DNA of 64,000 bases from Macrostomum lignano (taxonomy: Eukaryota): assembly GCA_002269645.1 (NCBI GenBank), contig NIVC01001385.1:219539-283538 (forward strand). The letters are read 5' to 3'. Below are positions 19,711 through 64,000 of the stretch, piece by piece. Position 1 is the first letter of the stretch, and each line of letters begins with the position of its first letter. The notes beneath the pieces are model-generated. The model worked only from the letters and a program-made list of their open reading frames with translations, was not told the origin of the DNA and ran no database searches. The translations under genes were made by a program, and so were the position numbers.

Positions 19711-21699
19711 CAATAAAATCAGCAATTTTAGATGATTTTTTAGTATATAGGACTGTACTGTTGACAAGTATTTTGAGGTGTTTCAAGTCCGAATTGTTAA
19801 ACTTATTGATGTCTTAAATGAAAGGGCATATGTTACTGCCTATTCTGCGCCAAAATAAGCATCTTACGATCAATAGCGTGCACAGGAGATACATTGAAAA
19901 ATGGGCCATCAATGAAATTTTCGCCAATTCTGAGTCTTTCGTCCTTCTACTTAAGTAGTCCTTGAGTCAAGAATGTACACTGTACATAGAAGATTGTGCA
20001 GATGGTTGAAAACTTCATTTCCGATCGATTTCATTTTAGTCAGTGATAAGAATGTTTCTTATAATTTGCATTTACACTACCGTCCTAAAAGTAGTATCAT
20101 TCTTGGTCCCCACAGCGAGATAGGGAGTGACCTATCTAGTTCTATAGTATCTGTGCTTTATCCTAGATATCCTGTTCAAATTTATCTGGGGAGCACAATT
20201 GAAGTTCCGACTAGCACTTTAACAGGAAGTGAAATTCACTTTGGGCAGGTCCCATTTTCGTAAGGGATCTCTGGTCTCGCAGTCCTCATTGCTTCGCAGG
20301 CCAGTTTATGGTTTGCTATTCTTATCTATGGCAGGGTGCGTTTTGATTCTGGATTGGAAATTTCTACATAGTACATTAGTTTTTGTTTGAGTAGTGCCAT
20401 TTGAAGCTGCTGTAAAAGGGACTTTGTAGAGTTATCTGCCTTCTGGTCTCCGGTGTCTCGTAAATTCCAGTTCAAACTAGCTTTGTGTGTTCTGATTGAA
20501 TTCGCTAGCTACTCGTTCATGTCGACAGTTTTGTATTATTTCGCTATTCATTTAAATGCTGTAAGGCCAGACAGGACTGAACTAGACAGAGAGTGACAGA
20601 AAGCATGCAGAATAAACAGAGACGAGAGCAGCTGACTAGATGAATGAGGTTTCGCCATAGACAAATTCGCTCGAAAAGAATCAGTCTGAAAAAGTCACAT
20701 TAAGCATCAAGAACAGCTTACGAACTTTCGCCAGAACTTTGCCTACTTGCCGGTTTCTGGTAGCAGTCCATGAACAAATGGAACAAATAGCTTGATAAAA
20801 ATGTGCATTGTATTGTATATTAGACAGAAATAACTGCATTTTTCAGCACTACCATTCCAAGGAAAACAACTGACAGACGTTCCTTGAAATGCATTCTGAA
20901 GCGAAACTGCACTTCCGTGTACATTATCTTTTAATTATTGATTGCAGCCTTGACGTCATCTGGCACGTCTTCAGAGCTTCTCGTGCTTACTGCATGTACG
21001 AGTACAGTGTGGGTAGCACCAGGCCGTTGAGCCGCCTCTCCGGTTGGCATCGACCCACCGGACTGTACGTTACAAGACGCTTAGCTGGGACATCGATTGA
21101 CCCAATGATGCATTGAAACAACAAACTCCTTCTTCCTGCAGCACACAGCCCTGGAGATAGCAGAAATTGAGATCTGAAGTTGGTTGTTTGATGGAGAGCG
21201 CTTTCACGTGACTGCACAGCTCTATTTCAAAGCTTGATGTCTCAATCGAAATGTTAATGCAGGGCGCGGTCAAAATGGTGTATGGTGGCGTCGATTTAAG
21301 TCATCTTTTGTCCCTTCAGTTATCTCAGAAGCTGAATTCGGTAAAATGCTTTGAGAGCCATCCAATTTCGTTAATTTCCGCTAAAAGCATCGAACCACTC
21401 AGCTTTTGTAGAGTTAAGACTGTTGAACTGAACATGTAAAACAAAAAGCCGCAAATGGAAATCGCCCAGTGTTGCACGCACCACCATTGACACGCAAAAA
21501 TTGGGCGGGGCTACTGCTCGGGGCGATGAAAAAACCCATATAAACCTATTTAAACCCATAAAACTGACGTTCTCAATTGCAGGGCCGAGTGCTGGATAAG
21601 CAGACTACCAACTAGAGCTTCAAGTTGAAGACTTTTGCTATCTTATTTTCCGATGAGCGAAAGTGTCACAAGTCCTGTTAATCCTTGCTCAAAGTAGTC

Positions 21700-22788
21700 A
21701 TGAGTAACGCGTCAAGCGCTGTCAACTATATTTTTGTGGACTCTGTCGACTATATAGTGTCGGATTGTCAAAGTGGGGACCCGAACAGAACGGCGACTTG
21801 CACTGTCAACACCGTCCTGGGTGCCATCACGGGCCTGGTTCTGCCTGTTTTCATTGTCTCCGGTCTCGTGTTCAACGCTCTCATAGTGTACATCAACCTG
21901 GTCAAACAACCGTGGACTCGACAGAATGTGTACATCAGCATAATTGCGGTCACAGACAGCTGCAACATCATCGTGAACGGCTTCATGTGGATGTTCTTGG
22001 CCAAGGGCTTGCCATGGTTAACCAACGGATCCGTCGGTTATGTACATCTTAACGACGGAGACGTGCAGTGTAGATTTGCGAAATATTTTGAGCACCTGTG
22101 CCACCTAACATCGACTGCAGTGTTTCTGCTAATGGTGACTGACAGGACTCTAAGCCTGTACTTTCCGTTCAAATTTCAGAGCATCAGCGGAAAGGCTGCG
22201 ATGAAGGCCGGGTTATTAGTGATCCTGGCCTGTATGGTTGTCACCCTTCCCATCGCCTTTATCTTTCACTGGATAATTTATGAGAGCTACATAGTCTGTT
22301 ACTACAGCATGCTCGAAATGTTACCATGGCAACACACCGTTCTGTACTACTATTCGGCTTTGCTTTACTACCCACCGGCCCTTTTACTGACGGTTATTTT
22401 CATTGAGAACTGTTTCCTGATTCACAAGGTACGAGAGATCACCGCCAATAGAAAGAGGCTGGGCTCTGCTAAGGAATCTGATGACGGGCTAGTAAACACA
22501 GTGATCTGCCTCGCTCTGTCGGCCTGTCTGCTTCTGTCTGCCTCGCTGACTTTCTTTGCCCGAACCAGCGAGTACGTTCTATCTCTGCTATTTGGCGAAT
22601 ACGATTCAGAAATAGGCACCGTGTTGTGGGGAATTCACGACATCGGCATATCAATGATCATAATTGGCCAGTCCACCAACTGGATCCTGCTGGTGTGGAA
22701 GAATGCCAGGTTCCGTCGGCTTCTATTGGAGACGGTAAAATGCAGGAAACCGGTGGATCAGAAGACGGCTACCACTGGCACAAAATAA
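21700..22788 (+). CDS. Intronless rhodopsin-like orphan GPCR, copy 3, intact (362 aa from MSNAS)
   Basis: ORF 21685..22788 with ATG at 21700. It has the same seven-TM motifs as copy 1 and a near-identical sequence apart from ECL2, ECL3 and the C-tail. Confidence 0.9.
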   Translation: MSNASSAVNYIFVDSVDYIVSDCQSGDPNRTATCTVNTVLGAITGLVLPVFIVSGLVFNALIVYINLVKQPWTRQNVYISIIAVTDSCNIIVNGFMWMFLAKGLPWLTNGSVGYVHLNDGDVQCRFAKYFEHLCHLTSTAVFLLMVTDRTLSLYFPFKFQSISGKAAMKAGLLVILACMVVTLPIAFIFHWIIYESYIVCYYSMLEMLPWQHTVLYYYSALLYYPPALLLTVIFIENCFLIHKVREITANRKRLGSAKESDDGLVNTVICLALSACLLLSASLTFFARTSEYVLSLLFGEYDSEIGTVLWGIHDIGISMIIIGQSTNWILLVWKNARFRRLLLETVKCRKPVDQKTATTGTK

Positions 22789-25080: not shown

Positions 25081-46501
<21,421 letters not shown>

Positions 46502-47803
46502 GTGAGTCTGTCAACTTATGAACATCTGCAAATTCCAGGGGCCAAACTGATGGGCAGAGCAGCTCAGAGGTGCATGTAAACGGGTCTTGTGCACGAAAAT
46601 GTACGTGCCTGGAAGATTGGAAAGTCAAAGGGCCGCTGTAAACCCTGTGTGAGTGTGTGTGTGAGTGTGTGTGTGTGTGAGTTTGTGCATTAGGCATTTC
46701 TTGGGACAAGCGTGTATAAACTGACCCGTGCTATTAGGACCAAAAATGTGTTGGGCCAGGCCCAATATGTGCGTCCCGACACTTCTAAAAATCAAGGCTA
46801 CTAAATTAAAAAAATATTCGTTCGAACCGTCGTTCGATTCCCTTTTCAGAAACCAAACAACAGAAACCATATTTCTTACGATACATGAGTAATTTAGCGA
46901 TTAACAATGTCCCAACAGGTTAGGAAAATCATGCAAAACCATTTTTGGTTCAATAGAACAATTGGGACTTTAATCATACTTTCATGTCTCGTCTTTTTAT
47001 CATGTAATATTCTAAAAGGTCTACTTAAAGTAAAGCTGAATGCTTAATAAGGAGCCTGTCTAAAGCTGAAGAGATCAGATATCATTTGGCAGCGTGGTCG
47101 TGGCTACATAAGTTTTCCAGGATGTTTTGCTGTAAGAACTGTTAGTTTATCTCATATACACTCTAATCTATAAAATTCTACATTCTAATTGTAAAATTTT
47201 CAACTCTGAAGTATACTAAAATTGGGACAATGTTCAACACTACTAACACTTAGTAACTTTATCGCTCCACTACAGGTGTATTGTTTCTATTGTTCCAACG
47301 TACTCTTCTCCCTATTTCACCTATCAGCGATTCGCGAGCATATTAATATAGAGCTTAAAATTTTAACAACCACAATTAAAATTCTTGCATTCTTTTTCTT
47401 ACGGAGAGATTACAGAGCAAAATAAGCCCCTAGGCCTCAATCCCTCTCTCACAAAACGTTTTGGCCAGGCTAAACAGCTTGGTAAAGAACTTTGTCCCAG
47501 CTTCGATCGATAATCGAGCTAACGCGCGTGTGTACATTCTGAAGTGTGGGGACACGCACAAATAAAACCCAATCAACCTTCTCTCCAGGCCAATTGAGTG
47601 TACATTCAGAAGTGTTAGGACAGCCAAGCCACCCCTATTTAGAGCCCCCACAAACCTCTTTCAAAGGCCAATCGGAAGAACCAAACTAAATCTAGATTGA
47701 GACAATTTTGTACAATACATTGACTTCCCGATACTATTCTATTTACTATAAGCCATTCTGAATTTGATCTAGTCAAAATACTCGTAGCTACATACTTAAA
47801 ACA

Positions 47804-48586
47804 ATGCGGCAGAAGGCCGCTAAGAAGCTGAAGGCCCAAAGAAAAGTAAGAAAGAGGCCACTAGAGGTTAATGGCCATGCCAACCGAAGAGTGGAAGTGA
47901 AATTTGATAAAAGGCATCCCGCCTACGGCCAGACCAACGTTGTATATCTAAGCGACCTAAAGTTTAAAGGTCAACTATGCCATGGAACACGAGTCGTGAT
48001 GCAGTGGAAGGGAAAGGAGTGGAGCGGCACGGTGACTAACATGTAAGTGACATTAAAAAAAACTATATCTTCCTATACTAGTCTTATTGATTTCTAAATA
48101 ACACAATTACGTGCACACTGTACTTTGCGTAAATTAACACAAATATGTAATTTACTGCAGATACATTGATGCAGACCCACTACCGTTTGAAGCCGTTACT
48201 AAAGGGCTACCAACTCTAACAGGTATGTATGCCTATATTAAACATTCAATTACTTATCCACGAAGAGTATACTCATAAAGACTATCAATCTTACTTCTTA
48301 CTTATCAATGCCCGAAAAAATAGCAATGATGTTTAGGTGAAAAGAGATCCCTTAAATCAATTTTCAATTTTATAGAGGAACAATTAGCAAATCGAAACGT
48401 CTCATATAGTGGCCGTGCGTTTGAAAAATACTACATTGGTAAGAAAAAACATAATACTCTAAATCTTAAATGTACCTCCGTAAAAGCCTTGAAATTCCCT
48501 TGAAAGCGAAAACTAAAACTTTGTAGAGATGGAAGAAAAGCAATTTCGCAGCATCTTCAAGCTTAAAAAACATCGATCCAATGCAG
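47804..48586 (+). CDS. 5' exons of the tyrosine-recombinase-like gene (47804-48042, 48161-48222, 48376-48438, 48527-48586)
   Basis: ATG at 47804. The exons are open and phase-compatible (2, 1, 1, 1) with GT-AG boundaries. The joined protein is MRQKAAKKLK..WKGKEWSGTVTN-IYIDADPLPFEAVTKGLPTLT-EEQLANRNVSYSGRAFEKYYI-EMEEKQFRSIFKLKKHRSNA. It ends in phase 1, matching the repeated exon. Confidence 0.62.
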
Positions 48587-48762
48587 GTACTTTGACTGCA
48601 GAAACTGTATTTCACATAGAAAAGCACATATTAACTATATTATTTACACATCAAACGTAGAAAAGAAAAGCACAAAAAAAACATTTTTAGTGGCAACGGT
48701 CGGACAGAAAAACAAACACATTGCACTGGTATATACAAGCAAAGCTCAAATGTGGAGCAATC

Positions 48763-51700
48763 ATTGGGACAACATTGTGCGGATGTGATGTTTGAGGCAT
48801 TTATTGGGACGCACTTAATGGGACATGGAGTCTGTTATTTTTAACGCGGCTCTGGCTGTGACTAGAAAATGGTTCTTGTAGTTGAGCCAGCAAAGCATAG
48901 CTCTCTCTAAATAAACAAAACAGAATAGTAGCTTTCTAAGTAGCTCGAGTTTGAGTTTGGGAATCTGTGAAACTTTGCTCAGCCAATGATTACGTTCATG
49001 AAGTGTGTCTACACTACACAACTCCTTTCACACAGCTTCTGAAGTCGAGAGTTCCGCTGACGCGTCGCGGATTGAGCCCAACTTGAATGCGGTCTCCGCA
49101 AGCACAGACGCCACTGGTTCAAGCCTTGTCGCTGAACTAGCTAGTGCCATTCAGCCTGCTCAACAGCAGCCTCCAGCCGGCTTCAGCCAGACAGTTAGTC
49201 AGCTCCCAAGTGGTGCTACAGAAAGTCATTCAAGCGAAAGTGCAAATGCTAAGAGGAAACGGCGATCTGCTCAAGGTGAGCACTGCATGAGCATTGCTTT
49301 GTCTGCATGAAGGTACATGTACTTTAAGCGGGAGTGTTTGGGAGCCTTGGCAAATAAGGCAATGGATATTTTGGGCGGGCATCGGCAGGACAGAAAAACA
49401 CATACACTTGGGCACTTATTGGGACAACATTGTGCGGATGTGATGTTTGAGGCATTTATTGGGACGCACTTAATGGGACATGGAGTCTGTTATTTTTAAC
49501 GCGGCTCTGGCTGTGACTAGAAAATGGTTCTTGTAGTTGAGCCAGCAAAGCATAGCTCTCTCTAAATAAACAAAACAGAATAGTAGCTTTCTAAGTAGCT
49601 CGAGTTTGAGTTTGGGAATCTGTGAAACTTTGCTCAGCCAATGATTACGTTCATGAAGTGTGTCTACACTACACAACTCCTTTCACACAGCTTCTGAAGT
49701 CGAGAGTTCCGCTGACGCGTCGCGGATTGAGCCCAACTTGAATGCGGTCTCCGCAAGCACAGACGCCACTGGTTCAAGCCTTGTCGCTGAACTAGCTAGT
49801 GCCATTCAGCCTGCTCAACAGCAGCCTCCAGCCGGCTTCAGCCAGACAGTTAGTCAGCTCCCAAGTGGTGCTACAGAAAGTCATTCAAGCGAAAGTGCAA
49901 ATGCTAAGAGGAAACGGCGATCTGCTCAAGGTGAGCACTGCATGAGCATTGCTTTGTCTGCATGAAGGTACATGTACTTTAAGCGGGAGTGTTTGGGAGC
50001 CTTGGCAAATAAGGCAATGGATATTTTGGGCGGGCATCGGCAGGACAGAAAAACACATACACTTGGGCACTTATTGGGACAACATTGTGCGGATGTGATG
50101 TTTGAGGCATTTATTGGGACGCACTTAATGGGACATGGAGTCTGTTATTTTTAACGCGGCTCTGGCTGTGACTAGAAAATGGTTCTTGTAGTTGAGCCAG
50201 CAAAGCATAGCTCTCTCTAAATAAACAAAACAGAATAGTAGCTTTCTAAGTAGCTCGAGTTTGAGTTTGGGAATCTGTGAAACTTTGCTCAGCCAATGAT
50301 TACGTTCATGAAGTGTGTCTACACTACACAACTCCTTTGACACAGCTTCTGAAGTCGAGAGTTCCGCTGACGCGTCGCGGATTGAGCCCAACTTGAATGC
50401 GGTCTCCGCAAGCACAGACGCCACTGGTTCAAGCCTTGTCGCTGAACTAGCTAGTGCCATTCCGCCTGCTCAACAGCAGCCTCCAGCCGGCTTCAGCCAG
50501 ACAGTTAGTCAGCTCCCAAGTGGTGCTACAGAAAGTCATTCAAGCGAAAGTGCAAATGCTAAGAGGAAACGGCGATCTGCTCAAGGTGAGCACTGCATGA
50601 GCATTGCTTTGTCTGCATGAAGGTACATGTACTTTAAGCGGGAGTGTTTGGGAGCCTTGGCAAATAAGGCAATGGATATTTTGGGCGGGCATCGGCAGGA
50701 CAGAAAAACACATACACTTGGGCACTTATTGGGACAACATTGTGCGGATGTGATGTTTGAGGCATTTATTGGGACGCACTTAATGGGACATGGAGTCTGT
50801 TATTTTTAACGCGGCTCTGGCTGTGACTAGAAAATGGTTCTTGTAGTTGAGCCAGCAAAGCATAGCTCTCTCTAAATAAACAAAACAGAATAGTAGCTTT
50901 CTAAGTAGCTCGAGTTTGAGTTTGGGAATCTGTGAAACTTTGCTCAGCCAATGATTACGTTCATGAAGTGTGTCTACACTACACAACTCCTTTGACACAG
51001 CTTCTGAAGTCGAGAGTTCCGCTGACGCGTCGCGGATTGAGCCCAACTTGAATGCGGTCTCCGCAAGCACAGACGCCACTGGTTCAAGCCTTGTCGCTGA
51101 ACTAGCTAGTGCCATTCCGCCTGCTCAACAGCAGCCTCCAGCCGGCTTCAGCCAGACAGTTAGTCAGCTCCCAAGTGGTGCTACAGAAAGTCATTCAAGC
51201 GAAAGTGCAAATGCTAAGAGGAAACGGCGATCTGCTCAAGGTGAGCACTGCATGAGCATTGCTTTGTCTGCATGAAGGTACATGTACTTTAAGCGGGAGT
51301 GTTTGGGAGCCTTGGCAAATAAGGCAATGGATATTTTGGGCGGGCATCGGCAGGACAGAAAAACACATACACTTGGGCACTTATTGGGACAACATTGTGC
51401 GGATGTGATGTTTGAGGCATTTATTGGGACGCACTTAATGGGACATGGAGTCTGTTATTTTTAACGCGGCTCTGGCTGTGACTAGAAAATGGTTCTTGTA
51501 GTTGAGCCAGCAAAGCATAGCTCTCTCTAAATAAACAAAACAGAATAGTAGCTTTCTAAGTAGCTCGAGTTTGAGTTTGGGAATCTGTGAAACTTTGCTC
51601 AGCCAATGATTACGTTCATGAAGTGTGTCTACACTACACAACTCCTTTGACACAGCTTCTGAAGTCGAGAGTTCCGCTGACGCGTCGCGGATTGAGCCCA

Positions 51701-54700
51701 ACTTGAATGCGGTCTCCGCAAGCACAGACGCCACTGGTTCAAGCCTTGTCGCTGAACTAGCTAGTGCCATTCCGCCTGCTCAACAGCAGCCTCCAGCCGG
51801 CTTCAGCCAGACAGTTAGTCAGCTCCCAAGTGGTGCTACAGAAAGTCATTCAAGCGAAAGTGCAAATGCTAAGAGGAAACGGCGATCTGCTCAAGGTGAG
51901 CACTGCATGAGCATTGCTTTGTCTGCATGAAGGTACATGTACTTTAAGCGGGAGTGTTTGGGAGCCTTGGCAAATAAGGCAATGGATATTTTGGGCGGGC
52001 ATCGGCAGGACAGAAAAACACATACACTTGGGCACTTATTGGGACAACATTGTGCGGATGTGATGTTTGAGGCATTTATTGGGACGCACTTAATGGGACA
52101 TGGAGTCTGTTATTTTTAACGCGGCTCTGGCTGTGACTAGAAAATGGTTCTTGTAGTTGAGCCAGCAAAGCATAGCTCTCTCTAAATAAACAAAACAGAA
52201 TAGTAGCTTTCTAAGTAGCTCGAGTTTGAGTTTGGGAATCTGTGAAACTTTGCTCAGCCAATGATTACGTTCATGAAGTGTGTCTACACTACACAACTCC
52301 TTTGACACAGCTTCTGAAGTCGAGAGTTCCGCTGACGCGTCGCGGATTGAGCCCAACTTGAATGCGGTCTCCGCAAGCACAGACGCCACTGGTTCAAGCC
52401 TTGTCGCTGAACTAGCTAGTGCCATTCCGCCTGCTCAACAGCAGCCTCCAGCCGGCTTCAGCCAGACAGTTAGTCAGCTCCCAAGTGGTGCTACAGAAAG
52501 TCATTCAAGCGAAAGTGCAAATGCTAAGAGGAAACGGCGATCTGCTCAAGGTGAGCACTGCATGAGCATTGCTTTGTCTGCATGAAGGTACATGTACTTT
52601 AAGCGGGAGTGTTTGGGAGCCTTGGCAAATAAGGCAATGGATATTTTGGGCGGGCATCGGCAGGACAGAAAAACACATACACTTGGGCACTTATTGGGAC
52701 AACATTGTGCGGATGTGATGTTTGAGGCATTTATTGGGACGCACTTAATGGGACATGGAGTCTGTTATTTTTAACGCGGCTCTGGCTGTGACTAGAAAAT
52801 GGTTCTTGTAGTTGAGCCAGCAAAGCATAGCTCTCTCTAAATAAACAAAACAGAATAGTAGCTTTCTAAGTAGCTCGAGTTTGAGTTTGGGAATCTGTGA
52901 AACTTTGCTCAGCCAATGATTACGTTCATGAAGTGTGTCTACACTACACAACTCCTTTCACACAGCTTCTGAAGTCGAGAGTTCCGCTGACGCGTCGCGG
53001 ATTGAGCCCAACTTGAATGCGGTCTCCGCAAGCACAGACGCCACTGGTTCAAGCCTTGTCGCTGAACTAGCTAGTGCCATTCGCCTGCTCAACAGCAGCC
53101 TCCAGCCGGCTTCAGCCAGACAGTTAGTCAGCTCCCAAGTGGTGCTACAGAAAGTCATTCAAGCGAAAGTGCAAATGCTAAGAGGAAACGGCGATCTGCT
53201 CAAGGTGAGCACTGCATGAGCATTGCTTTGTCTGCATGAAGGTACATGTACTTTAAGCGGGAGTGTTTGGGAGCCTTGGCAAATAAGGCAATGGATATTT
53301 TGGGCGGGCATCGGCAGGACAGAAAAACACATACACTTGGGCACTTATTGGGACAACATTGTGCGGATGTGATGTTTGAGGCATTTATTGGGACGCACTT
53401 AATGGGACATGGAGTCTGTTATTTTTAACGCGGCTCTGGCTGTGACTAGAAAATGGTTCTTGTAGTTGAGCCAGCAAAGCATAGCTCTCTCTAAATAAAC
53501 AAAACAGAATAGTAGCTTTCTAAGTAGCTCGAGTTTGAGTTTGGGAATCTGTGAAACTTTGCTCAGCCAATGATTACGTTCATGAAGTGTGTCTACACTA
53601 CACAACTCCTTTCACACAGCTTCTGAAGTCGAGAGTTCCGCTGACGCGTCGCGGATTGAGCCCAACTTGAATGCGGTCTCCGCAAGCACAGACGCCACTG
53701 GTTCAAGCCTTGTCGCTGAACTAGCTAGTGCCATTCCGCCTGCTCAACAGCAGCCTCCAGCCGGCTTCAGCCAGACAGTTAGTCAGCTCCCAAGTGGTGC
53801 TACAGAAAGTCATTCAAGCGAAAGTGCAAATGCTAAGAGGAAACGGCGATCTGCTCAAGGTGAGCACTGCATGAGCATTGCTTTGTCTGCATGAAGGTAC
53901 ATGTACTTTAAGCGGGAGTGTTTGGGAGCCTTGGCAAATAAGGCAATGGATATTTTGGGCGGGCATCGGCAGGACAGAAAAACACATACACTTGGGCACT
54001 TATTGGGACAACATTGTGCGGATGTGATGTTTGAGGCATTTATTGGGACGCACTTAATGGGACATGGAGTCTGTTATTTTTAACGCGGCTCTGGCTGTGA
54101 CTAGAAAATGGTTCTTGTAGTTGAGCCAGCAAAGCATAGCTCTCTCTAAATAAACAAAACAGAATAGTAGCTTTCTAAGTAGCTCGAGTTTGAGTTTGGG
54201 AATCTGTGAAACTTTGCTCAGCCAATGATTACGTTCATGAAGTGTGTCTACACTACACAACTCCTTTGACACAGCTTCTGAAGTCGAGAGTTCCGCTGAC
54301 GCGTCGCGGATTGAGCCCAACTTGAATGCGGTCTCCGCAAGCACAGACGCCACTGGTTCAAGCCTTGTCGCTGAACTAGCTAGTGCCATTCCGCCTGCTC
54401 AACAGCAGCCTCCAGCCGGCTTCAGCCAGACAGTTAGTCAGCTCCCAAGTGGTGCTACAGAAAGTCATTCAAGCGAAAGTGCAAATGCTAAGAGGAAACG
54501 GCGATCTGCTCAAGGTGAGCACTGCATGAGCATTGCTTTGTCTGCATGAAGGTACATGTACTTTAAGCGGGAGTGTTTGGGAGCCTTGGCAAATAAGGCA
54601 ATGGATATTTTGGGCGGGCATCGGCAGGACAGAAAAACACATACACTTGGGCACTTATTGGGACAACATTGTGCGGATGTGATGTTTGAGGCATTTATTG

Positions 54701-57700
54701 GGACGCACTTAATGGGACATGGAGTCTGTTATTTTTAACGCGGCTCTGGCTGTGACTAGAAAATGGTTCTTGTAGTTGAGCCAGCAAAGCATAGCTCTCT
54801 CTAAATAAACAAAACAGAATAGTAGCTTTCTAAGTAGCTCGAGTTTGAGTTTGGGAATCTGTGAAACTTTGCTCAGCCAATGATTACGTTCATGAAGTGT
54901 GTCTACACTACACAACTCCTTTGACACAGCTTCTGAAGTCGAGAGTTCCGCTGACGCGTCGCGGATTGAGCCCAACTTGAATGCGGTCTCCGCAAGCACA
55001 GACGCCACTGGTTCAAGCCTTGTCGCTGAACTAGCTAGTGCCATTCCGCCTGCTCAACAGCAGCCTCCAGCCGGCTTCAGCCAGACAGTTAGTCAGCTCC
55101 CAAGTGGTGCTACAGAAAGTCATTCAAGCGAAAGTGCAAATGCTAAGAGGAAACGGCGATCTGCTCAAGGTGAGCACTGCATGAGCATTGCTTTGTCTGC
55201 ATGAAGGTACATGTACTTTAAGCGGGAGTGTTTGGGAGCCTTGGCAAATAAGGCAATGGATATTTTGGGCGGGCATCGGCAGGACAGAAAAACACATACA
55301 CTTGGGCACTTATTGGGACAACATTGTGCGGATGTGATGTTTGAGGCATTTATTGGGACGCACTTAATGGGACATGGAGTCTGTTATTTTTAACGCGGCT
55401 CTGGCTGTGACTAGAAAATGGTTCTTGTAGTTGAGCCAGCAAAGCATAGCTCTCTCTAAATAAACAAAACAGAATAGTAGCTTTCTAAGTAGCTCGAGTT
55501 TGAGTTTGGGAATCTGTGAAACTTTGCTCAGCCAATGATTACGTTCATGAAGTGTGTCTACACTACACAACTCCTTTGACACAGCTTCTGAAGTCGAGAG
55601 TTCCGCTGACGCGTCGCGGATTGAGCCCAACTTGAATGCGGTCTCCGCAAGCACAGACGCCACTGGTTCAAGCCTTGTCGCTGAACTAGCTAGTGCCATT
55701 CCGCCTGCTCAACAGCAGCCTCCAGCCGGCTTCAGCCAGACAGTTAGTCAGCTCCCAAGTGGTGCTACAGAAAGTCATTCAAGCGAAAGTGCAAATGCTA
55801 AGAGGAAACGGCGATCTGCTCAAGGTGAGCACTGCATGAGCATTGCTTTGTCTGCATGAAGGTACATGTACTTTAAGCGGGAGTGTTTGGGAGCCTTGGC
55901 AAATAAGGCAATGGATATTTTGGGCGGGCATCGGCAGGACAGAAAAACACATACACTTGGGCACTTATTGGGACAACATTGTGCGGATGTGATGTTTGAG
56001 GCATTTATTGGGACGCACTTAATGGGACATGGAGTCTGTTATTTTTAACGCGGCTCTGGCTGTGACTAGAAAATGGTTCTTGTAGTTGAGCCAGCAAAGC
56101 ATAGCTCTCTCTAAATAAACAAAACAGAATAGTAGCTTTCTAAGTAGCTCGAGTTTGAGTTTGGGAATCTGTGAAACTTTGCTCAGCCAATGATTACGTT
56201 CATGAAGTGTGTCTACACTACACAACTCCTTTGACACAGCTTCTGAAGTCGAGAGTTCCGCTGACGCGTCGCGGATTGAGCCCAACTTGAATGCGGTCTC
56301 CGCAAGCACAGACGCCACTGGTTCAAGCCTTGTCGCTGAACTAGCTAGTGCCATTCCGCCTGCTCAACAGCAGCCTCCAGCCGGCTTCAGCCAGACAGTT
56401 AGTCAGCTCCCAAGTGGTGCTACAGAAAGTCATTCAAGCGAAAGTGCAAATGCTAAGAGGAAACGGCGATCTGCTCAAGGTGAGCACTGCATGAGCATTG
56501 CTTTGTCTGCATGAAGGTACATGTACTTTAAGCGGGAGTGTTTGGGAGCCTTGGCAAATAAGGCAATGGATATTTTGGGCGGGCATCGGCAGGACAGAAA
56601 AACACATACACTTGGGCACTTATTGGGACAACATTGTGCGGATGTGATGTTTGAGGCATTTATTGGGACGCACTTAATGGGACATGGAGTCTGTTATTTT
56701 TAACGCGGCTCTGGCTGTGACTAGAAAATGGTTCTTGTAGTTGAGCCAGCAAAGCATAGCTCTCTCTAAATAAACAAAACAGAATAGTAGCTTTCTAAGT
56801 AGCTCGAGTTTGAGTTTGGGAATCTGTGAAACTTTGCTCAGCCAATGATTACGTTCATGAAGTGTGTCTACACTACACAACTCCTTTGACACAGCTTCTG
56901 AAGTCGAGAGTTCCGCTGACGCGTCGCGGATTGAGCCCAACTTGAATGCGGTCTCCGCAAGCACAGACGCCACTGGTTCAAGCCTTGTCGCTGAACTAGC
57001 TAGTGCCATTCCGCCTGCTCAACAGCAGCCTCCAGCCGGCTTCAGCCAGACAGTTAGTCAGCTCCCAAGTGGTGCTACAGAAAGTCATTCAAGCGAAAGT
57101 GCAAATGCTAAGAGGAAACGGCGATCTGCTCAAGGTGAGCACTGCATGAGCATTGCTTTGTCTGCATGAAGGTACATGTACTTTAAGCGGGAGTGTTTGG
57201 GAGCCTTGGCAAATAAGGCAATGGATATTTTGGGCGGGCATCGGCAGGACAGAAAAACACATACACTTGGGCACTTATTGGGACAACATTGTGCGGATGT
57301 GATGTTTGAGGCATTTATTGGGACGCACTTAATGGGACATGGAGTCTGTTATTTTTAACGCGGCTCTGGCTGTGACTAGAAAATGGTTCTTGTAGTTGAG
57401 CCAGCAAAGCATAGCTCTCTCTAAATAAACAAAACAGAATAGTAGCTTTCTAAGTAGCTCGAGTTTGAGTTTGGGAATCTGTGAAACTTTGCTCAGCCAA
57501 TGATTACGTTCATGAAGTGTGTCTACACTACACAACTCCTTTGACACAGCTTCTGAAGTCGAGAGTTCCGCTGACGCGTCGCGGATTGAGCCCAACTTGA
57601 ATGCGGTCTCCGCAAGCACAGACGCCACTGGTTCAAGCCTTGTCGCTGAACTAGCTAGTGCCATTCGCCTGCTCAACAGCAGCCTCCAGCCGGCTTCAGC

Positions 57701-60700
57701 CAGACAGTTAGTCAGCTCCCAAGTGGTGCTACAGAAAGTCATTCAAGCGAAAGTGCAAATGCTAAGAGGAAACGGCGATCTGCTCAAGGTGAGCACTGCA
57801 TGAGCATTGCTTTGTCTGCATGAAGGTACATGTACTTTAAGCGGGAGTGTTTGGGAGCCTTGGCAAATAAGGCAATGGATATTTTGGGCGGGCATCGGCA
57901 GGACAGAAAAACACATACACTTGGGCACTTATTGGGACAACATTGTGCGGATGTGATGTTTGAGGCATTTATTGGGACGCACTTAATGGGACATGGAGTC
58001 TGTTATTTTTAACGCGGCTCTGGCTGTGACTAGAAAATGGTTCTTGTAGTTGAGCCAGCAAAGCATAGCTCTCTCTAAATAAACAAAACAGAATAGTAGC
58101 TTTCTAAGTAGCTCGAGTTTGAGTTTGGGAATCTGTGAAACTTTGCTCAGCCAATGATTACGTTCATGAAGTGTGTCTACACTACACAACTCCTTTGACA
58201 CAGCTTCTGAAGTCGAGAGTTCCGCTGACGCGTCGCGGATTGAGCCCAACTTGAATGCGGTCTCCGCAAGCACAGACGCCACTGGTTCAAGCCTTGTCGC
58301 TGAACTAGCTAGTGCCATTCCGCCTGCTCAACAGCAGCCTCCAGCCGGCTTCAGCCAGACAGTTAGTCAGCTCCCAAGTGGTGCTACAGAAAGTCATTCA
58401 AGCGAAAGTGCAAATGCTAAGAGGAACGGCGATCTGCTCAAGGTGAGCACTGCATGAGCATTGCTTTGTCTGCATGAAGGTACATGTACTTTAAGCGGGA
58501 GTGTTTGGGAGCCTTGGCAAATAAGGCAATGGATATTTGGGCGGGCATCGGCAGGACAGAAAAACACATACACTTGGGCACTTATTGGGACAACATTGTG
58601 CGGATGTGATGTTTGAGGCATTTATTGGGACGCACTTAATGGGACATGGAGTCTGTTATTTTTAACGCGGCTCTGGCTGTGACTAGAAAATGGTTCTTGT
58701 AGTTGAGCCAGCAAAGCATAGCTCTCTCTAAATAAACAAAACAGAATAGTAGCTTTCTAAGTAGCTCGAGTTTGAGTTTGGGAATCTGTGAAACTTTGCT
58801 CAGCCAATGATTACGTTCATGAAGTGTGTCTACACTACACAACTCCTTTGACACAGCTTCTGAAGTCGAGAGTTCCGCTGACGCGTCGCGGATTGAGCCC
58901 AACTTGAATGCGGTCTCCGCAAGCACAGACGCCATGGTTCAAGCCTTGTCGCTGAACTAGCTAGTGCCATTCCGCCTGCTCAACAGCAGCCTCCAGCCGG
59001 CTTCAGCCAGACAGTTAGTCAGCTCCCAAGTGTGCTACAGAAAGTCATTCAAGCGAAAGTGCAAATGCTAAGAGGAAACGGCGATCTGCTCAAGGTGAGC
59101 ACTGCATGAGCATTGCTTTGTCTGCATGAAGGTACATGTACTTTAAGCGGGAGTGTTTGGGAGCCTTGGCAAATAAGGCAATGGATATTTTGGGCGGGCA
59201 TCGGCAGGACAGAAACACATACACTTGGGCACTTATTGGGACAACATTGTGCGGATGTGATGTTTGAGGCATTTATTGGGACGCACTTAATGGGACATGG
59301 AGTCTGTTATTTTAACGCGGCTCTGGCTGTGACTAGAAAATGGTTCTTGTAGTTGAGCCAGCAAAGCATAGCTCTCTCTAAATAAACAAAACAGAATAGT
59401 AGCTTTCTAAGTAGCTCGAGTTTGAGTTTGGGAATCTGTGAAACTTTGCTCAGCCAATGATTACGTTCATGAAGTGTGTCTACACTACAACTCCTTTGAC
59501 ACAGCTTCTGAAGTCGAGAGTTCCGCTGACGCGTCGCGGATTGAGCCCAACTTGAATGCGGTCTCCGCAAGCACAGACGCCACTGGTTCAAGCCTTGTCG
59601 CTGAACTAGCTAGTGCCATTCCGCCTGCTCAACAGCAGCCTCCAGCCGGCTTCAGCCAGACAGTTAGTCAGCTCCCAAGTGGTGCCTACAGAAAGTCATT
59701 CAAGCGAAAGTGCAAATGCTAGAGGAAACGGCGATCTGCTCAAGGTGAGCACTGCATGAGCATTGCTTTGTCTGCATGAAGGTACATGTACTTTAAGCGG
59801 GAGTGTTTGGGAGCCTTGGCAAATAAGGCAATGGATATTTTGGGCGGGCATCGGCAGGACAGAAAAACACATACACTTGGGCACTTATTGGGACAACATT
59901 GTGCGGATGTGATGTTTGAGGCATTTATTGGGACGCACTTAATGGGACATGGAGTCTGTTATTTTTAACGCGGCTCTGGCTGTGACTAGAAAATGGTTTT
60001 GTAGTTGAGCCAGCAAAGCATAGCTCTCTCTAAAAAACAAAACAGAATAGTAGCTTTCTAAGTAGCTCGAGTTTGAGTTTGGGAATCTGTGAAACTTTGC
60101 TCAGCCAATGATTACGTTCATGAAGTGTGTCTACACTACACAACTCCTTTGACACAGCTTCTGAAGTCGAGAGTTCCGCTGACGCGTCGCGGATTGAGCC
60201 CAACTTGAATGCGGTCTCCGCAAGCACAGACGCCACTGGTTCAAGCCTTGTCGCTGAACTAGCTAGTGCCATTCCGCCTGCTCAACAGCAGCCTCCAGCC
60301 GGCTTCAGCAGACAGTTAGTCAGCTCCCAAGTGGTGCTACAGAAAGTCATTCAAGCGAAAGTGCAAATGCTAAGAGGAAACGGCGATCTGCTCAAGGTGA
60401 GCACTGCATGAGCATTGCTTTGTCTGCATGAAGGTACATGTACTTTAAGCGGGAGTGTTTGGAGCCTTGGCAAATAAGCAATGGATATTTTGGGCGGCAT
60501 CGGCAGGACAGAAAAACACATACACTTGGGCACTTTTGGGACAACATTGTGCGGATGTGATGTTTGAGGCATTTATTGGGACGCACTTATGGGACATGGA
60601 GTCTGTTATTTTTAACGCGGCTCTGGCTGTGACTAGAAATGGTTCTTGTAGTTGAGCCAGCAAAGCATAGCTCTCTCTAATAAACAAAACAGAATAGTAG

Positions 60701-61710
60701 CTTTCTAAGTAGCTCGAGTTTGAGTTTGGGAATCTGTGAAACTTTGCTCAGCCAATGATTACGTTCATGAAGTGTGTCTACACTACACAACTCCTTTGAC
60801 ACAGCTTCTGAAGTCGAGAGTTCCGCTGACGCGTCGCGGATTGAGCCCAACTTGAATGCGCGTCTCCGCAAGCACAGACGCCACTGGTTCAAGCCTTGTC
60901 GCTGAACTAGCTAGTGCCATTCCGCCTGCTCAACAGCAGCCTCCAGCCGGCTTCAGCCAGACAGTTAGTCAGCTCCAAGTGGTGCTACAGAAAGTCATTC
61001 AAGCGAAAGTGCAAATGCTAAGAGGAAACGGCGATCTGCTCAAGGTGAGCACTGCATGAGCATTGCTTTGTCTGCATGAAGGTACATGTATTTAAGCGGG
61101 AGTGTTTGGGAGCCTTGGCAAAATAAGCAATGGATATTTTGGGCGGGCATCGGCAGGACAGAAAACACATACACTTGGCACTTATTGGGACAACATTGTG
61201 CGGATGTGATGTTTGAGGCATTTATTGGGACGCACTTAATGGGACATGGAGTCTGTTATTTTTAACGCGGCTCTGGCTGTGACTAGAAAATGGTTCTTGT
61301 AGTTGAGCCAGCAAAGCATAGCTCTCTCTAAATAAACAAAACAGAATAGTAGCTTTCTAAGTAGCTCGAGTTTGAGTTTGGGAATCTGTGAAACTTTGCT
61401 CAGCAATGATTACGTTCATGAAGTGTGTCTACACTACACTCCTTTGCACAGCTTCTGAAGTCGAGAGTTCCGCTGACGCGTCGCGGATTGAGCCCAACTT
61501 GAATGCGGTCTCCGCAAGCACAGACGCCACTGTTCAAGCTTTGACACAGCTTCTGAAGTCGAGAGTTCCGCTGACGCGTCGCGGATTGAGCCCAACTTGA
61601 ATGCGGTCTCCGCAAGCACAGACGCCACTGGTTCAAGCCTTGTCGCTGAACTAGCTAGTGCCATTCAGCCTGCTCAACAGCAGCCTCCAGCCGGCTTCAG
61701 CAGACAGTTA
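48763..61710 (+). repeat. Tandem array of ~19.8 x 655-bp units; each unit = ~415-nt intron + 240-nt symmetric (phase 1-1) exon
   Basis: 655-bp periodicity in the ORF track (49005, 49660, 50315...). The first exon is 49036-49275, bounded by CACAG| and |GTGAG, and encodes ASEVESSADASRIEPNLNAV..NAKRKRRSAQ. Confidence 0.95.
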
Positions 61711-64000
61711 ATCAGCCCCAAGGTTGTCGCGAAATCGATCAGTTCCTTTGTGCACCTGTGGCGTATTGTTCTGAAGATGCAAACTTTGCGATTTTAAAAC
61801 CGGTCTCGAATCCGAAGTCGTGCTGTGAGCCACATTTTGGGGCTCTGGCTTTTGCTGCTGATGATAGTGATCCATATCATCTGGAAAGCAATACTGGAAC
61901 CGATTGTTCAGCTGGAGCTGTAGTGGGTTGCTCAAATTACGAGAATTTGGCCGCCGACAATTCGAATTTTTATCCTCAGATGAATGCCTTGTCTGTGGTT
62001 CAAGATTTTTCTGCGCATTCGATGCCGTCCCAACTCGTTGATTTTGTAACTGCGAAAGCTGAAGATGGTGATCAAGTGACCTTTTCGGCTAATGTCAATG
62101 TTAGTTCCGCGCGGATTGAAGAAGAAAGTGTCTCAGTTACTCTACCTGTTTCCTTGAAGCCTGAGGATGACGCAGGATGCAGTGTTGTTTTGCAGAAGCT
62201 TGTCAGTTCGCGAACAAAGCTTCATTACTGCAAATATTGTGGCAAAATGTTGACGAAAATCTCTCGGCACTACAAAACCGCTCATAAAAGCAGAGTCTGA
62301 CGTTAAGCGCTTGCAGCAGATCCGCCGTAAGTCCATTCGTAGAAAGGCATTTAAGGCCCTTGAAAGCGAAGGCGATTATATTCACAATAAAATGGTTTTG
62401 GCAAAACGAGAAGGTGAATTAATAATTGCAAGGAGACAAAAGGACGATGAAAATTCTCCTGGGAGTTTTCTTCCCTGTCATCGATGCTTTCAATTCATAA
62501 AGAAGGATCTTCTCTACCGCCACAGAAATGCATGCTCCGGTAGCCTATCTGAAATTATTAAGGAAGACGAGAATGACTCCGATGAAGACACTGAGAACTC
62601 TTCGCCCTCCGAGTCAGAGAGTGCAGAAGCGCGCCTAAAAAATCCTACGAACAATCACTACGTGCAGCTGTCTCGAATTCTGCTAAAAATCCAGAGCCTG
62701 CTTCAAACTTCTGGAACCAGATTCGGAACTCTTTAAGACAGTTCTCTCAAGACTCATTTGTGATGATCTGTTTGATACAATCTGCAAAGATGAGCTTTTA
62801 CTTCGTTTAGGTGATCGTTATTTGTCTAAGCAAAAAAAGGTGAACCAGGCAGCACGTGTCTAGTAAAATCAGGGATGCAGCTCGTGTTTTTATTCAGCTA
62901 CAGCAGTTGCATGGTGATTATAGCTTAAGACACTTTCTGCAACCACAGTATTTTGATGATTGGATCGAAGTTATCCGAAAGTTATCGAATGAGGCCCCAA
63001 CATTCGCACTACGCATGGTCATTCAATACCGCATCTGTGCAATATCCTAATCGGTGAAGCGATTAGGACTTCTAATGATGGCCTTAAAAAGTCCGCATCT
63101 GACTTTCTTGAGCTGAAAAATACTGAGTACCACCATCTCGTTACTGCGAAGAGCCTCAAGACAATAAGTGAAAGAGCAGCACGCTTGTGCAGGACTGTGT
63201 ACCGCTGACGGACGACATAGTAAAACTTTCCACTTTTATGAAGTCGGCGATTGTCGATAAAATCGAAGAGCTCAAGACAGGAACATTGGATTCAAATGTT
63301 CCTTTGTTGTACGTGAACTAGTCTACCTAATCATGACAAAACTAACTTTTTTCAACCGGCGCCGATCCAGTGAGATTTCTCAAATGGTAATGGCGATGTA
63401 GATGCAGCTTCGGCATCTCACACGCAGGATGACCTGCATCAGTATTTGACGCCACTCGAGAAGGAACTCGCCAGCAGGTTAAAGGTCATAAATATATCAG
63501 GCAAAAGAGGACGAATCTGTGCCTATCGTTATCGATCGAATTTGTTGGGATGGACTGATGTGCCTAAAAGACTGTCGCGAGGCTGCCGGTGTAAGCCGAA
63601 AGAACGTATTTGTGTTTGCGATTCCTGGCTATGAACAATCCGTCTACAGATGTCCTGTGGCAATCGACAAAGTAGTGAAAATGAGCTCACTCCAAACTGC
63701 AACGAGCGGATCTCCTTCGCTCAAGATTTTTAAGGAAGCATTGTGCGACTGTTTCGCAACTTCTTGACTTAAAAGACAATGAGCTAGATTGGCTAGCTCG
63801 CCATCTCGGCCATGATATACTGTCCACAGACAGTTCTACAGATTACATCAAATACTCTCGAGCTAGCAAAGGTTTCGAAGATTTTGGAGTTGATGGAGAG
63901 TGGGAACCTGAAGAAATTTAAAGGAAAGGGTCTGGAAGAAATAACATTAGAAGATTTATCAGAGCCGCCGTTGGATGACCATGATGAGACAGCAGAGTTA
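61550..64000 (+). CDS. Terminal exon: C2H2-like zinc finger + tyrosine-recombinase-like catalytic domain (Crypton-like); frameshifted in this sequence and truncated by the window end
   Basis: CKYCGKMLTKISRHYKTAH; EGDYIHNKMVL; LPCHRC..LYRHRNAC; FNRRRSSE (63351-63374); GKRGR (63500-63514); LRKHCAT (63730-63750); LGH (63805-63813); VHRQFY (Tyr 63837-63839). These follow the R..K..xxxR..H..Y order of tyrosine recombinases. The frameshifts are mostly single-base losses in homopolymers. Confidence 0.8.

Follow-up and report, generated by a model that had tools for sequence, protein, structure and literature searches.

We consider it likely that positions 46646-64000 of the 64,000-nucleotide stretch of Macrostomum lignano DNA analyzed here (hereafter the window) represent the 5' two-thirds of a single copy of a DNA transposon that has a tyrosine recombinase (YR) as its only enzyme, works in a Crypton-like manner, and carries in its recombinase gene a tandem exon array that is spliced head to tail and resized by unequal exchange or slippage. 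The 5' non-coding part, the exons, the array, and the protein domains described below all lie on the plus strand.

Seven copies of the element were found, about 99.8% identical over 14 kb. Similarity between paralogs begins at 46646, at an imperfect (TG)n tract (46646-46681, no strand assigned; TRF row 46646-46687) that forms the 5' element junction and is target-derived and/or a terminal direct repeat. Upstream of it, the sequence is different in each of the four copies with a 5' flank; on the other side, the 3' flanks are of five different kinds, with one pair, L004 and L005, having a common 3' flank. Because the similarity between copies stops at (TG)n on both sides, the flanks are otherwise unrelated, and the copies occupy several genomic sites, the locus is interpreted as a mobile element, which is apparently young. 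Every copy starts with (TG)n-TTTGTGCATTAGG and ends with GTGCACGTTTG-(TG)n, the terminal tracts varying from 10 to 46 nt and being flanked by GTGCA-type motifs. In the window, the 5' non-coding part (46682-47803) starts with TTTGTGCATTAGGCATTTCTTGGGAC and is 99.85% identical to the paralogous copy L001 from position 2834 onward. The element measures approximately 13.7-15 kb when it contains 8-10 array units, and about 21 kb in the window copy.

Neither a terminal inverted repeat (TIR) nor a long terminal repeat (LTR) was found at the termini, which bear the (TG)n direct repeat only. The open reading frame (ORF) lists of the complete L001 element and the Pfam searches yielded no reverse transcriptase (RT), RNase H, or methyltransferase; the long ORFs of L001 were the YR gene and ORFs arising from tandem repeats. 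A YR retrotransposon of the DIRS, Ngaro, or PAT-like kind was ruled out, given the lack of an RT or RNase H ORF and termini consisting of (TG)n only. Rfam and tRNA scans of the window gave no matches. Three internal tandem arrays are present, with units of 655 bp, 38 bp, and 47/48 bp. The motif TTGGGAC occurs 34 times on the plus strand of the 14.4-kb element, versus 0.02 times per kb in the remaining window. Near the termini, it is present 43 nt in from the 5' end and, in inverted orientation, no more than about 90 nt from the 3' end; it is found at 46701, 46962, and 47222 in the 5' non-coding part, twice per 655-bp unit (both in the unit's intron, 40 bp apart), and once per unit in 11 units of the 38-bp array near the 3' end.

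The sequence-only reading of this DNA had assigned the C-terminal part of the encoded protein to the YR fold, and this assignment was confirmed by the two-domain fold of a structural prediction together with the catalytic residues. The analysis was made with P0001, a gene model annotated on six paralogous contigs, whose conserved part starts at about residue 313 and in which everything N-terminal of that point is predicted to be disordered; its AF2 model has pLDDT values above 85 for most of residues 313-898. In a Foldseek search of the model against the PDB, the top 12 matches were XerH, XerD, and poxviral and bacterial topoisomerase IB, XerH being matched at E 5e-4 with prob 1.00 over approximately 410 columns. 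In the viral fold database BFVD, only generic integrases were returned, with those of phages leading. The YR motifs are located at 63348-63374 (FFNRRRSSE, with R-I and the Glu), 63497-63514 (SGKRGR, with the Lys), 63727-63750 (FLRKHCAT, with R-II), and 63793-63845 (LARHLGHDI and TVHRQFYRL, with two His residues and the Tyr nucleophile). The catalytic residues are highly conserved: R697 and E700 in 32/32 sequences each, K744 in 28/29, R820 in 25/25, H846 in 24/24, H851 in 24/25, and Y855 in 25/26. The position three residues before R-II, usually His, is Thr in most members and Arg in P0001. The GH-to-Y spacing is +9, which we take to be the same as in XerD.

Two zinc fingers precede the recombinase domain, one of the CCHH type (62223-62285, P0001 residues 319-337) and one of the CCHC type (62470-62535, residues 401-420). 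Of 25-30 family members, 24-30 retain the Cys/His residues of these fingers, which give weak profile matches to Ros-type C2H2 fingers. Pfam matches were lacking for P0001 and P0003 at E≤10 and for the 32 members of alignment A1 at E≤1, PF12012 (DUF3504) matched none of these 32 members, and nothing significant was obtained with the stitched window protein, the repeat exon, the N-terminal exons, or the last exon. When P0001 and the family profile were searched against PDB sequences, nothing outside weak zinc-finger matches was found.

The recombinase gene is predicted to begin with four small exons, placed where the sequence-only reading had put them. Exon 1 (47804-48042, 239 nt) starts with ATG, has the donor GTAAGT, and has a GC content of 0.49 versus 0.28 in the following intron. 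Exon 2 (48161-48222, 62 nt; GC 0.45 versus 0.28-0.29 in the flanking introns), exon 3 (48376-48438, 63 nt), and exon 4 (48527-48586, 60 nt) have AG/GT sites and open frames. Splice sites are GT-AG throughout, no stops occur, and the four exons sum to 424 nt, so that they end in phase 1, as had been claimed. The peptide of exons 1-4 plus one repeat had no matches in a protein database search and no phmmer matches among 189 relatives, and these exons are therefore a prediction without outside support; the annotated gene models begin within the array, downstream of them and of the predicted junction 48586>49036. The exon 1 product would have a basic N-terminus and a small β-barrel (residues 30-80, pLDDT ~85 in a single-sequence AF2 model of exon 1 alone). 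The predicted barrel resembles a Tudor domain, its best Foldseek matches being the KDM4A Tudor domains, with prob 0.96-0.98 but E values of 0.2-0.5.

Downstream of these exons lies a tandem array of 19 complete 655-bp units and a partial unit (48757-61722), each unit consisting of a 240-nt exon and a 415-nt intron. The units in the window are 98-100% identical, and the array contains no N's. The first repeat exon (49036-49275, 240 nt, phase 1-1) is bounded by acag/C at its acceptor and CAAG/gtgagc at its donor. Further intact exons start at 49691, 50346, 51001, 51656, 52311, 53620, 54275, 54930, 55585, 56240, and 56895, and exons with an indel in the assembly start at 52966, 57550, 58204, 58857, 59505, 60158, and 60805. 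The claim of nineteen complete 240-nt phase 1-1 copies thus stood for the units, all of which have AG/GT sites, but not for the exons, of which 12/19 are intact and the other seven have 1-2-nt indels. The repeat-exon segment is predicted to be disordered (AF2 pLDDT ~30) and has a KRKRR basic cluster per repeat; from this composition and predicted disorder, we infer that the repeat exons would provide a disordered N-terminal region whose length is set by the number of units.

On paralogous copies, gene models derived from RNA-seq show head-to-tail, in-frame splicing of the repeat exons, in agreement with the earlier proposal of a spliced YR gene in which one exon is present in many tandem copies that preserve the frame. 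P0001 joins a repeat exon to a repeat exon to the terminal exon exactly at the predicted junctions, and it is reproduced exactly by L001 exons 10001-10034, 10450-10689, 11105-13720, and 14184 onward, all with GT-AG sites. The contigs with NIVC01 accessions belong to the Mlig_3_7 assembly, whose annotation is an RNA-seq genome-guided transcriptome built with StringTie/TACO (PMC5730564). P0002, an independent UniRef model from M. lignano, joins 10 repeat exons. Transcript-derived models contain about 10 repeats at most, and short-read transcript assemblies collapse repeats.

The array is followed by a large exon encoding a variable linker, the two zinc fingers, and the YR domain (61550-64000, cut by the window end); in L001 it is intact and comprises 2616 nt (11105-13720). 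Over its first ~58 codons it repeats the start of the repeat exon, and it diverges at QTVNQPQGCREIDQF (61701). The expectation of a terminal exon with a repeat-derived start, a zinc finger, and a YR was upheld and extended to two fingers, but not as one open frame: relative to intact paralogs, the window exon has 16 single-base indels and one substitution, and it therefore reads in three frames. As assembled in the window, with indels in seven repeat exons and in the large exon, the gene has no continuous ORF. At the start of the large exon, the window copy alone contains a 98-nt local duplication (61442-61642, plus strand; TRF period 98, 2.1 copies), to which L001 11094-11197 aligns twice. 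A short last exon after the large exon encodes a C-terminal motif which, judged by eye, resembles the C-termini of P0008 and P0025 and appears to be conserved in the YR family.

These defects bear on whether the array, or the length it has, was created by the assembly and the window gene is a dead, decayed copy, which we regard as unlikely. The identity of the units to the consensus drops from 99.7% to 97.8% over the last six units toward the window end, just before the 98-nt duplication and the 16 indels, and the M. lignano assembly was made from PacBio data with Canu for a genome that is highly repetitive and partly duplicated and has large duplicated blocks (PMC5730564). However, arrays of 8.7-13.7 units are fully contained in four other contigs, between unique element sequence, and gene models of separate source contain 10 repeats; the array itself, present in seven contigs and two gene-model sets, was ruled out as an artefact. 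Indels outnumber substitutions 16:1, which is not expected of mutational decay, and since six near-identical paralogous copies are intact and the identity drop runs toward the window end, the window indels look like long-read assembly consensus errors rather than decay. Because the window copy bears these apparent errors, the exact count of 19 units is less certain than the array itself; the doubt is limited to this number and to the frameshifts and leaves the architecture untouched. The large duplicated blocks of the genome and the common 3' flank of L004 and L005 would also fit a host gene family, a domesticated recombinase spread by segmental duplication rather than a transposon. This appears highly improbable, as the other copies are similar exactly up to the (TG)n tract at either end and differ in their flanks, the copies are nearly identical over 14 kb, and the catalytic residues are intact.

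Comparison with the other genomic copies, as the sequence-only reading had proposed, showed that unit number differs: 8.7, 9.7, 9.7, 13.7, at least 10.7, at least 17.5, and 19.7 units per copy. Four columns vary among 83 units, each copy has a distinct first unit, a degenerate partial unit lies upstream, and interior G/C variants are ordered differently copy by copy. Array length probably changes as units that are 99.7% identical undergo ordinary unequal homologous exchange or slippage, which would account for copies with 8 to at least 19 units and differing variant orders. The earlier suggestion that the recombinase itself makes and resizes the array by site-specific recombination, in an integron-like way and with circles of multiples of 655 bp, has in its favour the established ability of YRs to excise and integrate circles, the short motifs repeated in each unit, and the recurrence across the YR family of tandem modules unrelated in sequence, for which a built-in tendency would account. 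It now seems very improbable: the element junctions are (TG)n with GTGCA-type motifs, neither the units nor their boundaries have such a junction, and the variant pattern fits ordinary unequal exchange, for which 99.7% identity over 655 bp suffices. The non-coding 38-bp and 47/48-bp arrays also vary among element copies, as ordinary minisatellites do, and the first unit and the degenerate upstream partial unit resemble a normal array edge. A different possibility, which we hold to be a real though lesser one, is that the array matters or persists as DNA, as an intronic or leader VNTR that is neutral or in which TTGGGAC is a putative binding site for the zinc-finger/YR protein, with the exon splicing incidental and the recombinase perhaps starting downstream. 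Such sites would be comparable to subterminal transposase-binding repeats. The enrichment of TTGGGAC in the element, at both of its ends, in the units, and in the 38-bp array is in line with this, as is the restriction of conservation in P0001 to the part behind its disordered N-terminal region, and the units are too alike to reveal coding constraint. Against it, the RNA-derived models keep the exons in frame, nearly all 83 units retain the 240-nt open frame, the symmetric phase, and consensus splice sites, and the repeats of relatives are translated, in some of them inside an uninterrupted ORF. A role of the array as DNA is compatible with the preferred reading, that of a transposon gene with a spliced exon array resized by exchange or slippage.

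The element behaves like a Crypton, and the likeness is one of features. Cryptons are DNA transposons for which a circle that recombines with a matching target has been proposed (PMC3212892; PMC9977147); their genes can contain introns, their termini are a short direct repeat matching the target (PMC3212892), and CryptonF-1_cRei is active in Chlamydomonas (PMC9977147). The classification as a Crypton given by the sequence-only reading holds in that the YR is the only enzyme, TIRs and LTRs are absent, and the same direct repeat stands at both termini, but the label is held back because no Pfam YR (phage-integrase) or DUF3504 model matches. Crypton DNA transposons were reportedly described by Goodwin et al. 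in 2003. Unlike Cryptons, the M. lignano element is 14-21 kb long with three internal tandem arrays, its YR has two N-terminal zinc fingers, and its recombinase gene contains an exon-plus-intron VNTR; in place of the fixed 4-6-bp word that Cryptons have as terminal and target repeat, it has a (TG)n microsatellite tract, 10-46 nt in length. Endogenous nimavirus YRs, some encoded by multi-exon genes, have a C2H2 domain N-terminal to the recombinase and integrate into telomere-type simple repeats, and they have been set apart from Cryptons and DIRS (PMC10871703). By their description, they share with the M. lignano element the zinc fingers N-terminal to the YR and the simple-repeat flanks, but they are part of viral genomes exceeding 100 kb, with (TAACC)n or 28S rDNA as their target, whereas here the YR gene is the sole gene of a 14-21-kb element at (TG)n. 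Our literature searches turned up neither a YR or Crypton gene that carries an array of exons nor a Crypton that targets (TG)n.

The array also invites comparison with other modular loci. In the human LPA kringle IV-2 VNTR, the unit is one or more whole exons plus intron with symmetric phase, copy number sets protein length, and copy number changes by unequal exchange. The M. lignano gene differs in that it encodes a transposon recombinase, its length differs between mobile-element copies in one genome, and its repeated module is a disordered basic/acidic segment rather than a folded domain. Integrons likewise encode a YR beside a tandem run of similar-sized modules, but each of their cassettes is a different gene, delimited by an attC that the integrase recognises, whereas the M. 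lignano units are identical to one another, belong to the recombinase gene itself as spliced exons, and have no recombination site at their borders. An integron-like cassette array was ruled out, as no sites are present at the unit borders.

By analogy with Cryptons, the recombinase would join the (TG)n tracts of both ends to form a circle with one (TG)n, which would then recombine with a genomic (TG)n microsatellite, and insertion would leave (TG)n of variable length at both sides. If this interpretation holds, a well-delimited and apparently young YR-only transposon becomes available from a laboratory flatworm with a transgenesis system, and its ends show (TG)n microsatellites as recombination sites, so that the poorly understood Crypton-type mechanism becomes testable in an animal. 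A recombinase targeting a simple dinucleotide repeat could interest genome engineering. In annotation, unless such an element is seen to be a single unit, it will be split into a 'satellite' and an 'uncharacterized protein'.

The YR family to which the protein belongs has no Pfam model and, at E≤0.001, numbers 5,348 cluster representatives. Of 148 cluster representatives (clusters at 50% identity), 20 have near-identical peptide repeats in tandem outside the core. Comparable exon arrays also occur in distantly related members from fish, namely carp and loach, and the architecture, of which the sequence-only reading knew no described case, is not unique. The modules of different family members are unrelated sequences. 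Single-copy relatives in a sea cucumber (L007) and an annelid (L008) had no informative flanking repeats at their loci, and the repeat-bearing relatives P0171, P0025, and P0116 had no gene records. Tandem and often exon-encoded modules, predicted to be disordered and flanking the zinc-finger/YR core, seem to recur as a habit of the family, and the core therefore appears to tolerate or favour a length-variable tail. If this holds, a very large unnamed animal YR family gains a recurrent trait, length-changing disordered modules. One may go further and suppose that the family has a built-in way of making and resizing exon-cassette arrays in its own genes, in which the recombinase or a circular or replicative intermediate acts on intronic TTGGGAC-type sites and the flatworm and fish arrays share one mechanism. 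We give this little credence; were it true, each transposon copy would carry a recombinase with a heritable, quickly adjustable tail length. Skipping of whole-unit exons, which had been anticipated for the flatworm gene, is seen in the annotated isoforms of the homologue from Misgurnus (loach), which match throughout apart from length differences of exactly 55 and 108 aa and so lack whole repeat units. In the gene from Cirrhinus (carp), the genomic unit measures about 1.46 kb, contains two exons, and is present in about five copies (tblastn). The carp locus also has a prominent microsatellite.

The DNA from 46646 to the end of the window at 64000 is the 5' part of a Crypton-like, probably (TG)n-targeting tyrosine recombinase (YR) transposon that carries an exon VNTR in its recombinase gene. 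Between 48757 and 61722, a 655-bp exon-plus-intron unit is repeated head to tail in 19 complete copies and a partial 20th, spaced 647-655 bp from start to start and 97.8-100% identical to the reference unit; this array is absent from the TRF output because the period limit there was 500. Within every unit lies a 240-nt segment with an open frame in phase 1, bordered by acag and gtgagc (the first at 49036-49275, forward strand), whose product reads ASEVESS...ANAKRKRRSAQ. The terminal exon starts at 61550 on the same strand. Its opening ~58 codons repeat the start of the repeat exon; it departs from the repeat sequence at QTVNQPQGCREIDQF (61701) and then encodes a pair of zinc fingers, at 62223-62285 and 62470-62535, and the recombinase motifs, at 63348-63845. 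With its AG/GT sites and phase 1 exons, the tandem-exon YR gene described in a sequence-only reading of this DNA is real, and fish relatives make the arrangement wider than that reading supposed.

Using the stitched window protein as query, we retrieved P0001, a 971-aa annotated M. lignano product encoded on six NIVC01 contigs of GCA_002269645.1, and the element locus is present in at least six further, intact copies (L001-L006). This assembly, Mlig_3_7, was annotated with a StringTie/TACO genome-guided transcriptome built from RNA-seq and de novo transcripts (PMC5730564). In L001, the intact reference paralog, exons 10001-10034, 10450-10689, 11105-13720, and 14184 onward, GT-AG and phase 1 throughout, reproduce P0001 exactly, so that this RNA-derived model uses the repeat-to-repeat and repeat-to-terminal-exon junctions that had been predicted. 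The model has an additional intron close to its 3' end, starts mid-exon, and lacks both start and stop codons; its ends look like those of a partial ORF on an assembled transcript. A separate UniRef gene model of M. lignano, P0002, runs through 10 spliced repeat exons into the beginning of the terminal exon.

The claim that the repeat exons preserve the frame holds in the paralogs, where they are nearly all exactly 240 nt long with AG/GT sites (intact in 9 of 9 cases in L002 and in all 16 visible in L005) and where the large exon is a single open stretch of 2616 nt, but 7 of the 19 repeat exons in the window carry 1-2-nt indels. The terminal exon of the window is spread over three reading frames, and the gene is not intact as assembled. 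Compared with L001, the stretch 61539-64000 shows 17 differences: one substitution and 16 single-base indels, several of which fall in short homopolymer runs. A 98-nt duplication at 61442-61642 is absent from the aligned paralog L001 and likewise from the unit matches in other paralogs, and the last six window units drop steadily in identity to the unit consensus; the upstream part of the window is 99.85% identical to L001 across 8.4 kb. Indels outnumber substitutions 16:1, and the assembly behind the related contigs was built with Canu from PacBio data and then polished with short reads (PMC5730564); from this we infer that the frameshifts are probably consensus errors in a poorly supported stretch rather than decay. 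On that reading, the architecture is firmer than the number of units, 19. Over 57550-64000, single-base indels pile up while substitutions do not, and consensus quality seems to fall; this region may lie near the contig end or have low read support.

Four small exons had also been proposed ahead of the array. Re-derived from the sequence, they lie on the forward strand at 47804-48042 (ATG start, GTAAGT donor), 48161-48222, 48376-48438, and 48527-48586, and they total 424 nt without a stop, which leaves their end in phase 1 and in frame with the repeat exons. Their GC contents are 0.49, 0.45, 0.38, and 0.38, against 0.28-0.31 in the introns between them. The open frame and the phase were thus recovered, but no gene model or database protein in the protein search covers these exons, and they remain unproven predictions. 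In a single-sequence AlphaFold model, exon 1 forms a small beta-barrel (pLDDT ~85 over residues 30-80), which Foldseek matches best in the PDB to Tudor domains of KDM4A (non-significant E of 0.2-0.5, prob 0.96-0.98, rmsd 1.8-3.0 Å) and next to Sac7d/Sso7d. The modeled barrel slightly favors exon 1 being coding; if it is real, the recombinase would carry a chromatin- or DNA-binding head before the repeat region.

The ends of the element were located by comparing its copies. Similarity begins at a (TG)n tract (46646-46681 in the window), followed by TTTGTGCATTAGGCATTTCTTGGGAC, and stops at ...AATAAGTGCCTCGTGCACGTTTG, again followed by (TG)n; the 5' tracts measure 24-46 nt and the 3' tracts 10-40 nt. 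Beyond them, four 5' flanks (window, L001, L002, and L003) and five 3' flanks are unrelated. An imperfect TGTGTGAG flank pattern reaches within a few bases of the element body in the window, which fits a crossover within a pre-existing microsatellite. An excised circle is predicted to carry the junction ...GTGCACGTTTG(TG)nTTTGTGCATTAGG... Complete copies are 13.7-15.0 kb long and contain 8.7-9.7 units, and by extrapolation the window copy measures ~21 kb. In the ORF lists, the recombinase gene is the sole long ORF of the element, and the remaining ORFs arise from internal tandem repeats.

The number of repeat exons changes between copies, as had been anticipated: 8.7 units in L003, 9.7 each in L001 and L002, 13.7 in L004, at least 10.7 in L006 (contig end), at least 17.5 in L005 (locus limit), and 19.7 in the window. 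L004 and L005 have a common 3' flank and probably represent a single insertion lying in assembly regions that are duplicated or redundant; in that case, array length (13.7 against at least 17.5 units) differs between the duplicates. It had further been suggested that the recombinase itself built or resized the array, in the manner of a cassette array. A comparison of the units in the copies examined revealed nothing at their borders pointing to site-specific recombination, and this suggestion is left without support. Only four columns vary among 83 complete units; the first unit differs from the rest in each copy that has one, and the interior units are of two types, with G or C seven bases before the acceptor, in an order that differs from copy to copy. 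The 29 nt directly upstream of the array are 83% identical to the unit end and appear to be a worn edge like that of a normal tandem array. Other arrays of the element vary between copies as well, namely those of 47/48 bp (L001 ~15004-15860) and 38 bp (16134-16550), and L002 is 613 bp longer in the 3' non-coding array region. These patterns fit unequal exchange or slippage as the source of the variation in unit number. LPA kringle IV-2 is a multi-exon VNTR of a host gene, and the flatworm exon VNTR works like such arrays. The part of the element past the window end contains two 3' non-coding tandem arrays (L001 15004-15860 and 16010-16750).

A rival reading holds that the array matters as DNA and not as protein, and it builds on putative protein-binding motifs. 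TTGGGAC occurs 34 times on the forward strand of the L001 element; the other 46.6 kb of the window contain it at 0.02 per kb when both strands are counted. Its enrichment within the element is approximately 50-fold. In the window it lies on the forward strand at 46701, 46962, and 47222, and then twice in every 655-bp unit, 40 bp apart in the array intron, from 48764/48804. In L001 one copy lies 43 nt in from the 5' end of the element, each of the 11 units of the 3' 38-bp array (16134-16514, forward strand) contains one, and an inverted copy is located at 17098, no more than ~90 nt from the 3' end. TGTGCA(T/A) motifs are found alongside it close to the two element ends, and GTGCAC stands 5 nt before the 3' (TG)n. 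Both TTGGGAC and TGTGCA(T/A) are candidate binding sites for the element's protein.

Searches of Pfam and of PDB sequences gave no match for the recombinase part. When 1.84 billion cluster representatives were scanned in full with HMMER, 5,348 relatives passed E<=0.001 and 727 passed E<=1e-30; every one aligns to P0001 over residues ~485-895. Those with species names come from a sea cucumber, a coral, cyprinid and other fishes, an annelid, a crinoid, a bivalve, and a beetle, and every one is annotated as "uncharacterized". AlphaFold2, run with a 32-sequence alignment, modeled residues 313-898 of P0001 confidently and 13-312 as disordered. In Foldseek, the model matched XerH and XerD first among PDB structures (E 5e-4, prob 1.00, ~410 aligned columns), followed by type IB topoisomerases. 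The catalytic residues of YRs are conserved (R697, E700, K744, R820, H846, H851, and Y855), as are the CCHH and CCHC zinc fingers across the family. The YR fold assigned to the C-terminal region was thereby borne out, and the model identifies P0001 as a YR from a large unnamed family. By eye, the segment encoded by the last exon resembles the C-termini of two related proteins, P0008 and P0025. Another relative, P0156, contains a Ulp1-type C48 peptidase domain (E 4e-19); this domain is reported from proteins of some CryptonS elements (Kojima & Jurka, PMC3212892).

Near-identical tandem peptide repeats of 21-67 aa were present in 20 of 148 representatives of the full scan, leaving out the query and models that fuse several cores; this frequency (~13%) is descriptive and does not denote an enrichment. 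The repeats either precede the zinc fingers or follow the recombinase core, are unrelated in sequence from lineage to lineage, and in many cases contain basic clusters like nuclear localization signals. In the carp Cirrhinus molitorella (L009, 8988-15748), a 49-aa repeat is encoded by two exons of 81 and 72 nt, with ~five copies at a genomic period of ~1.46 kb. Like that of the flatworm, this is an exon-plus-intron array, but it lies at the opposite, C-terminal end of the protein. Three annotated isoforms of the loach Misgurnus anguillicaudatus (P0164, P0167, and P0170), from one contig, differ in length by exactly 55 and 108 aa, equal to one and two repeat units, and otherwise show no mismatch. 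They form a ladder of in-frame unit skipping, of the kind that had been proposed for the flatworm gene. In a metagenomic relative, the repeats lie within a single uninterrupted ORF.

Cryptons are YR-only DNA elements without TIRs or LTRs, are low in copy number, and have an identical short direct repeat at both ends that matches the target (PMC3212892; PMC9977147). By these criteria, the flatworm element works like a Crypton. It differs in using a microsatellite tract and not a 4-6-bp word, in its larger size and internal arrays, and in a YR that bears zinc fingers and for which searches against DUF3504 and the other curated YR models detected no sequence match. The nearest described parallel, likened by its description, is the endogenous nimavirus recombinase, a zinc-finger YR that inserts into (TAACC)n simple repeats (PMC10871703). 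In a non-exhaustive literature search, neither an exon array in a YR or Crypton gene nor a Crypton that targets (TG)n was found described.

The remainder of the window contains other genes and repeats. Three closely related rhodopsin-type receptor genes form a cluster at 1947-3119 (-), 10161-10745 (+) with 12953-13519 (+), and 21685-22788 (+), their Pfam 7tm_1 match lying slightly under the curated cutoff. The halves of the middle gene are parted by ~2.2 kb with retroelement-like ORFs (11342-12863), which looks like an insertion. A pol fragment from an LTR retrotransposon, split among several broken frames, lies at 6420-8021 (-); it includes RNase H and an integrase zinc-binding domain. Cadherin-domain exons of a large gene extend over 29630-36408 (+) and are broken at 34200-35400 by a long CTGT-type simple repeat (AT skew -0.49) with artificial "SVCLSVCL" ORFs; further long low-complexity arrays occupy 26347-29039, 30166-30792, and 37605-38201. 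The nearest host gene upstream of the insertion has a fibrinogen C-terminal domain exon at 41482-42117 (-; Pfam E 7e-36), and between it and the element there are short tandem repeats at 42795-42959 (16 bp), 43665-43975 (33 bp), and 45844-46079 (39 bp).
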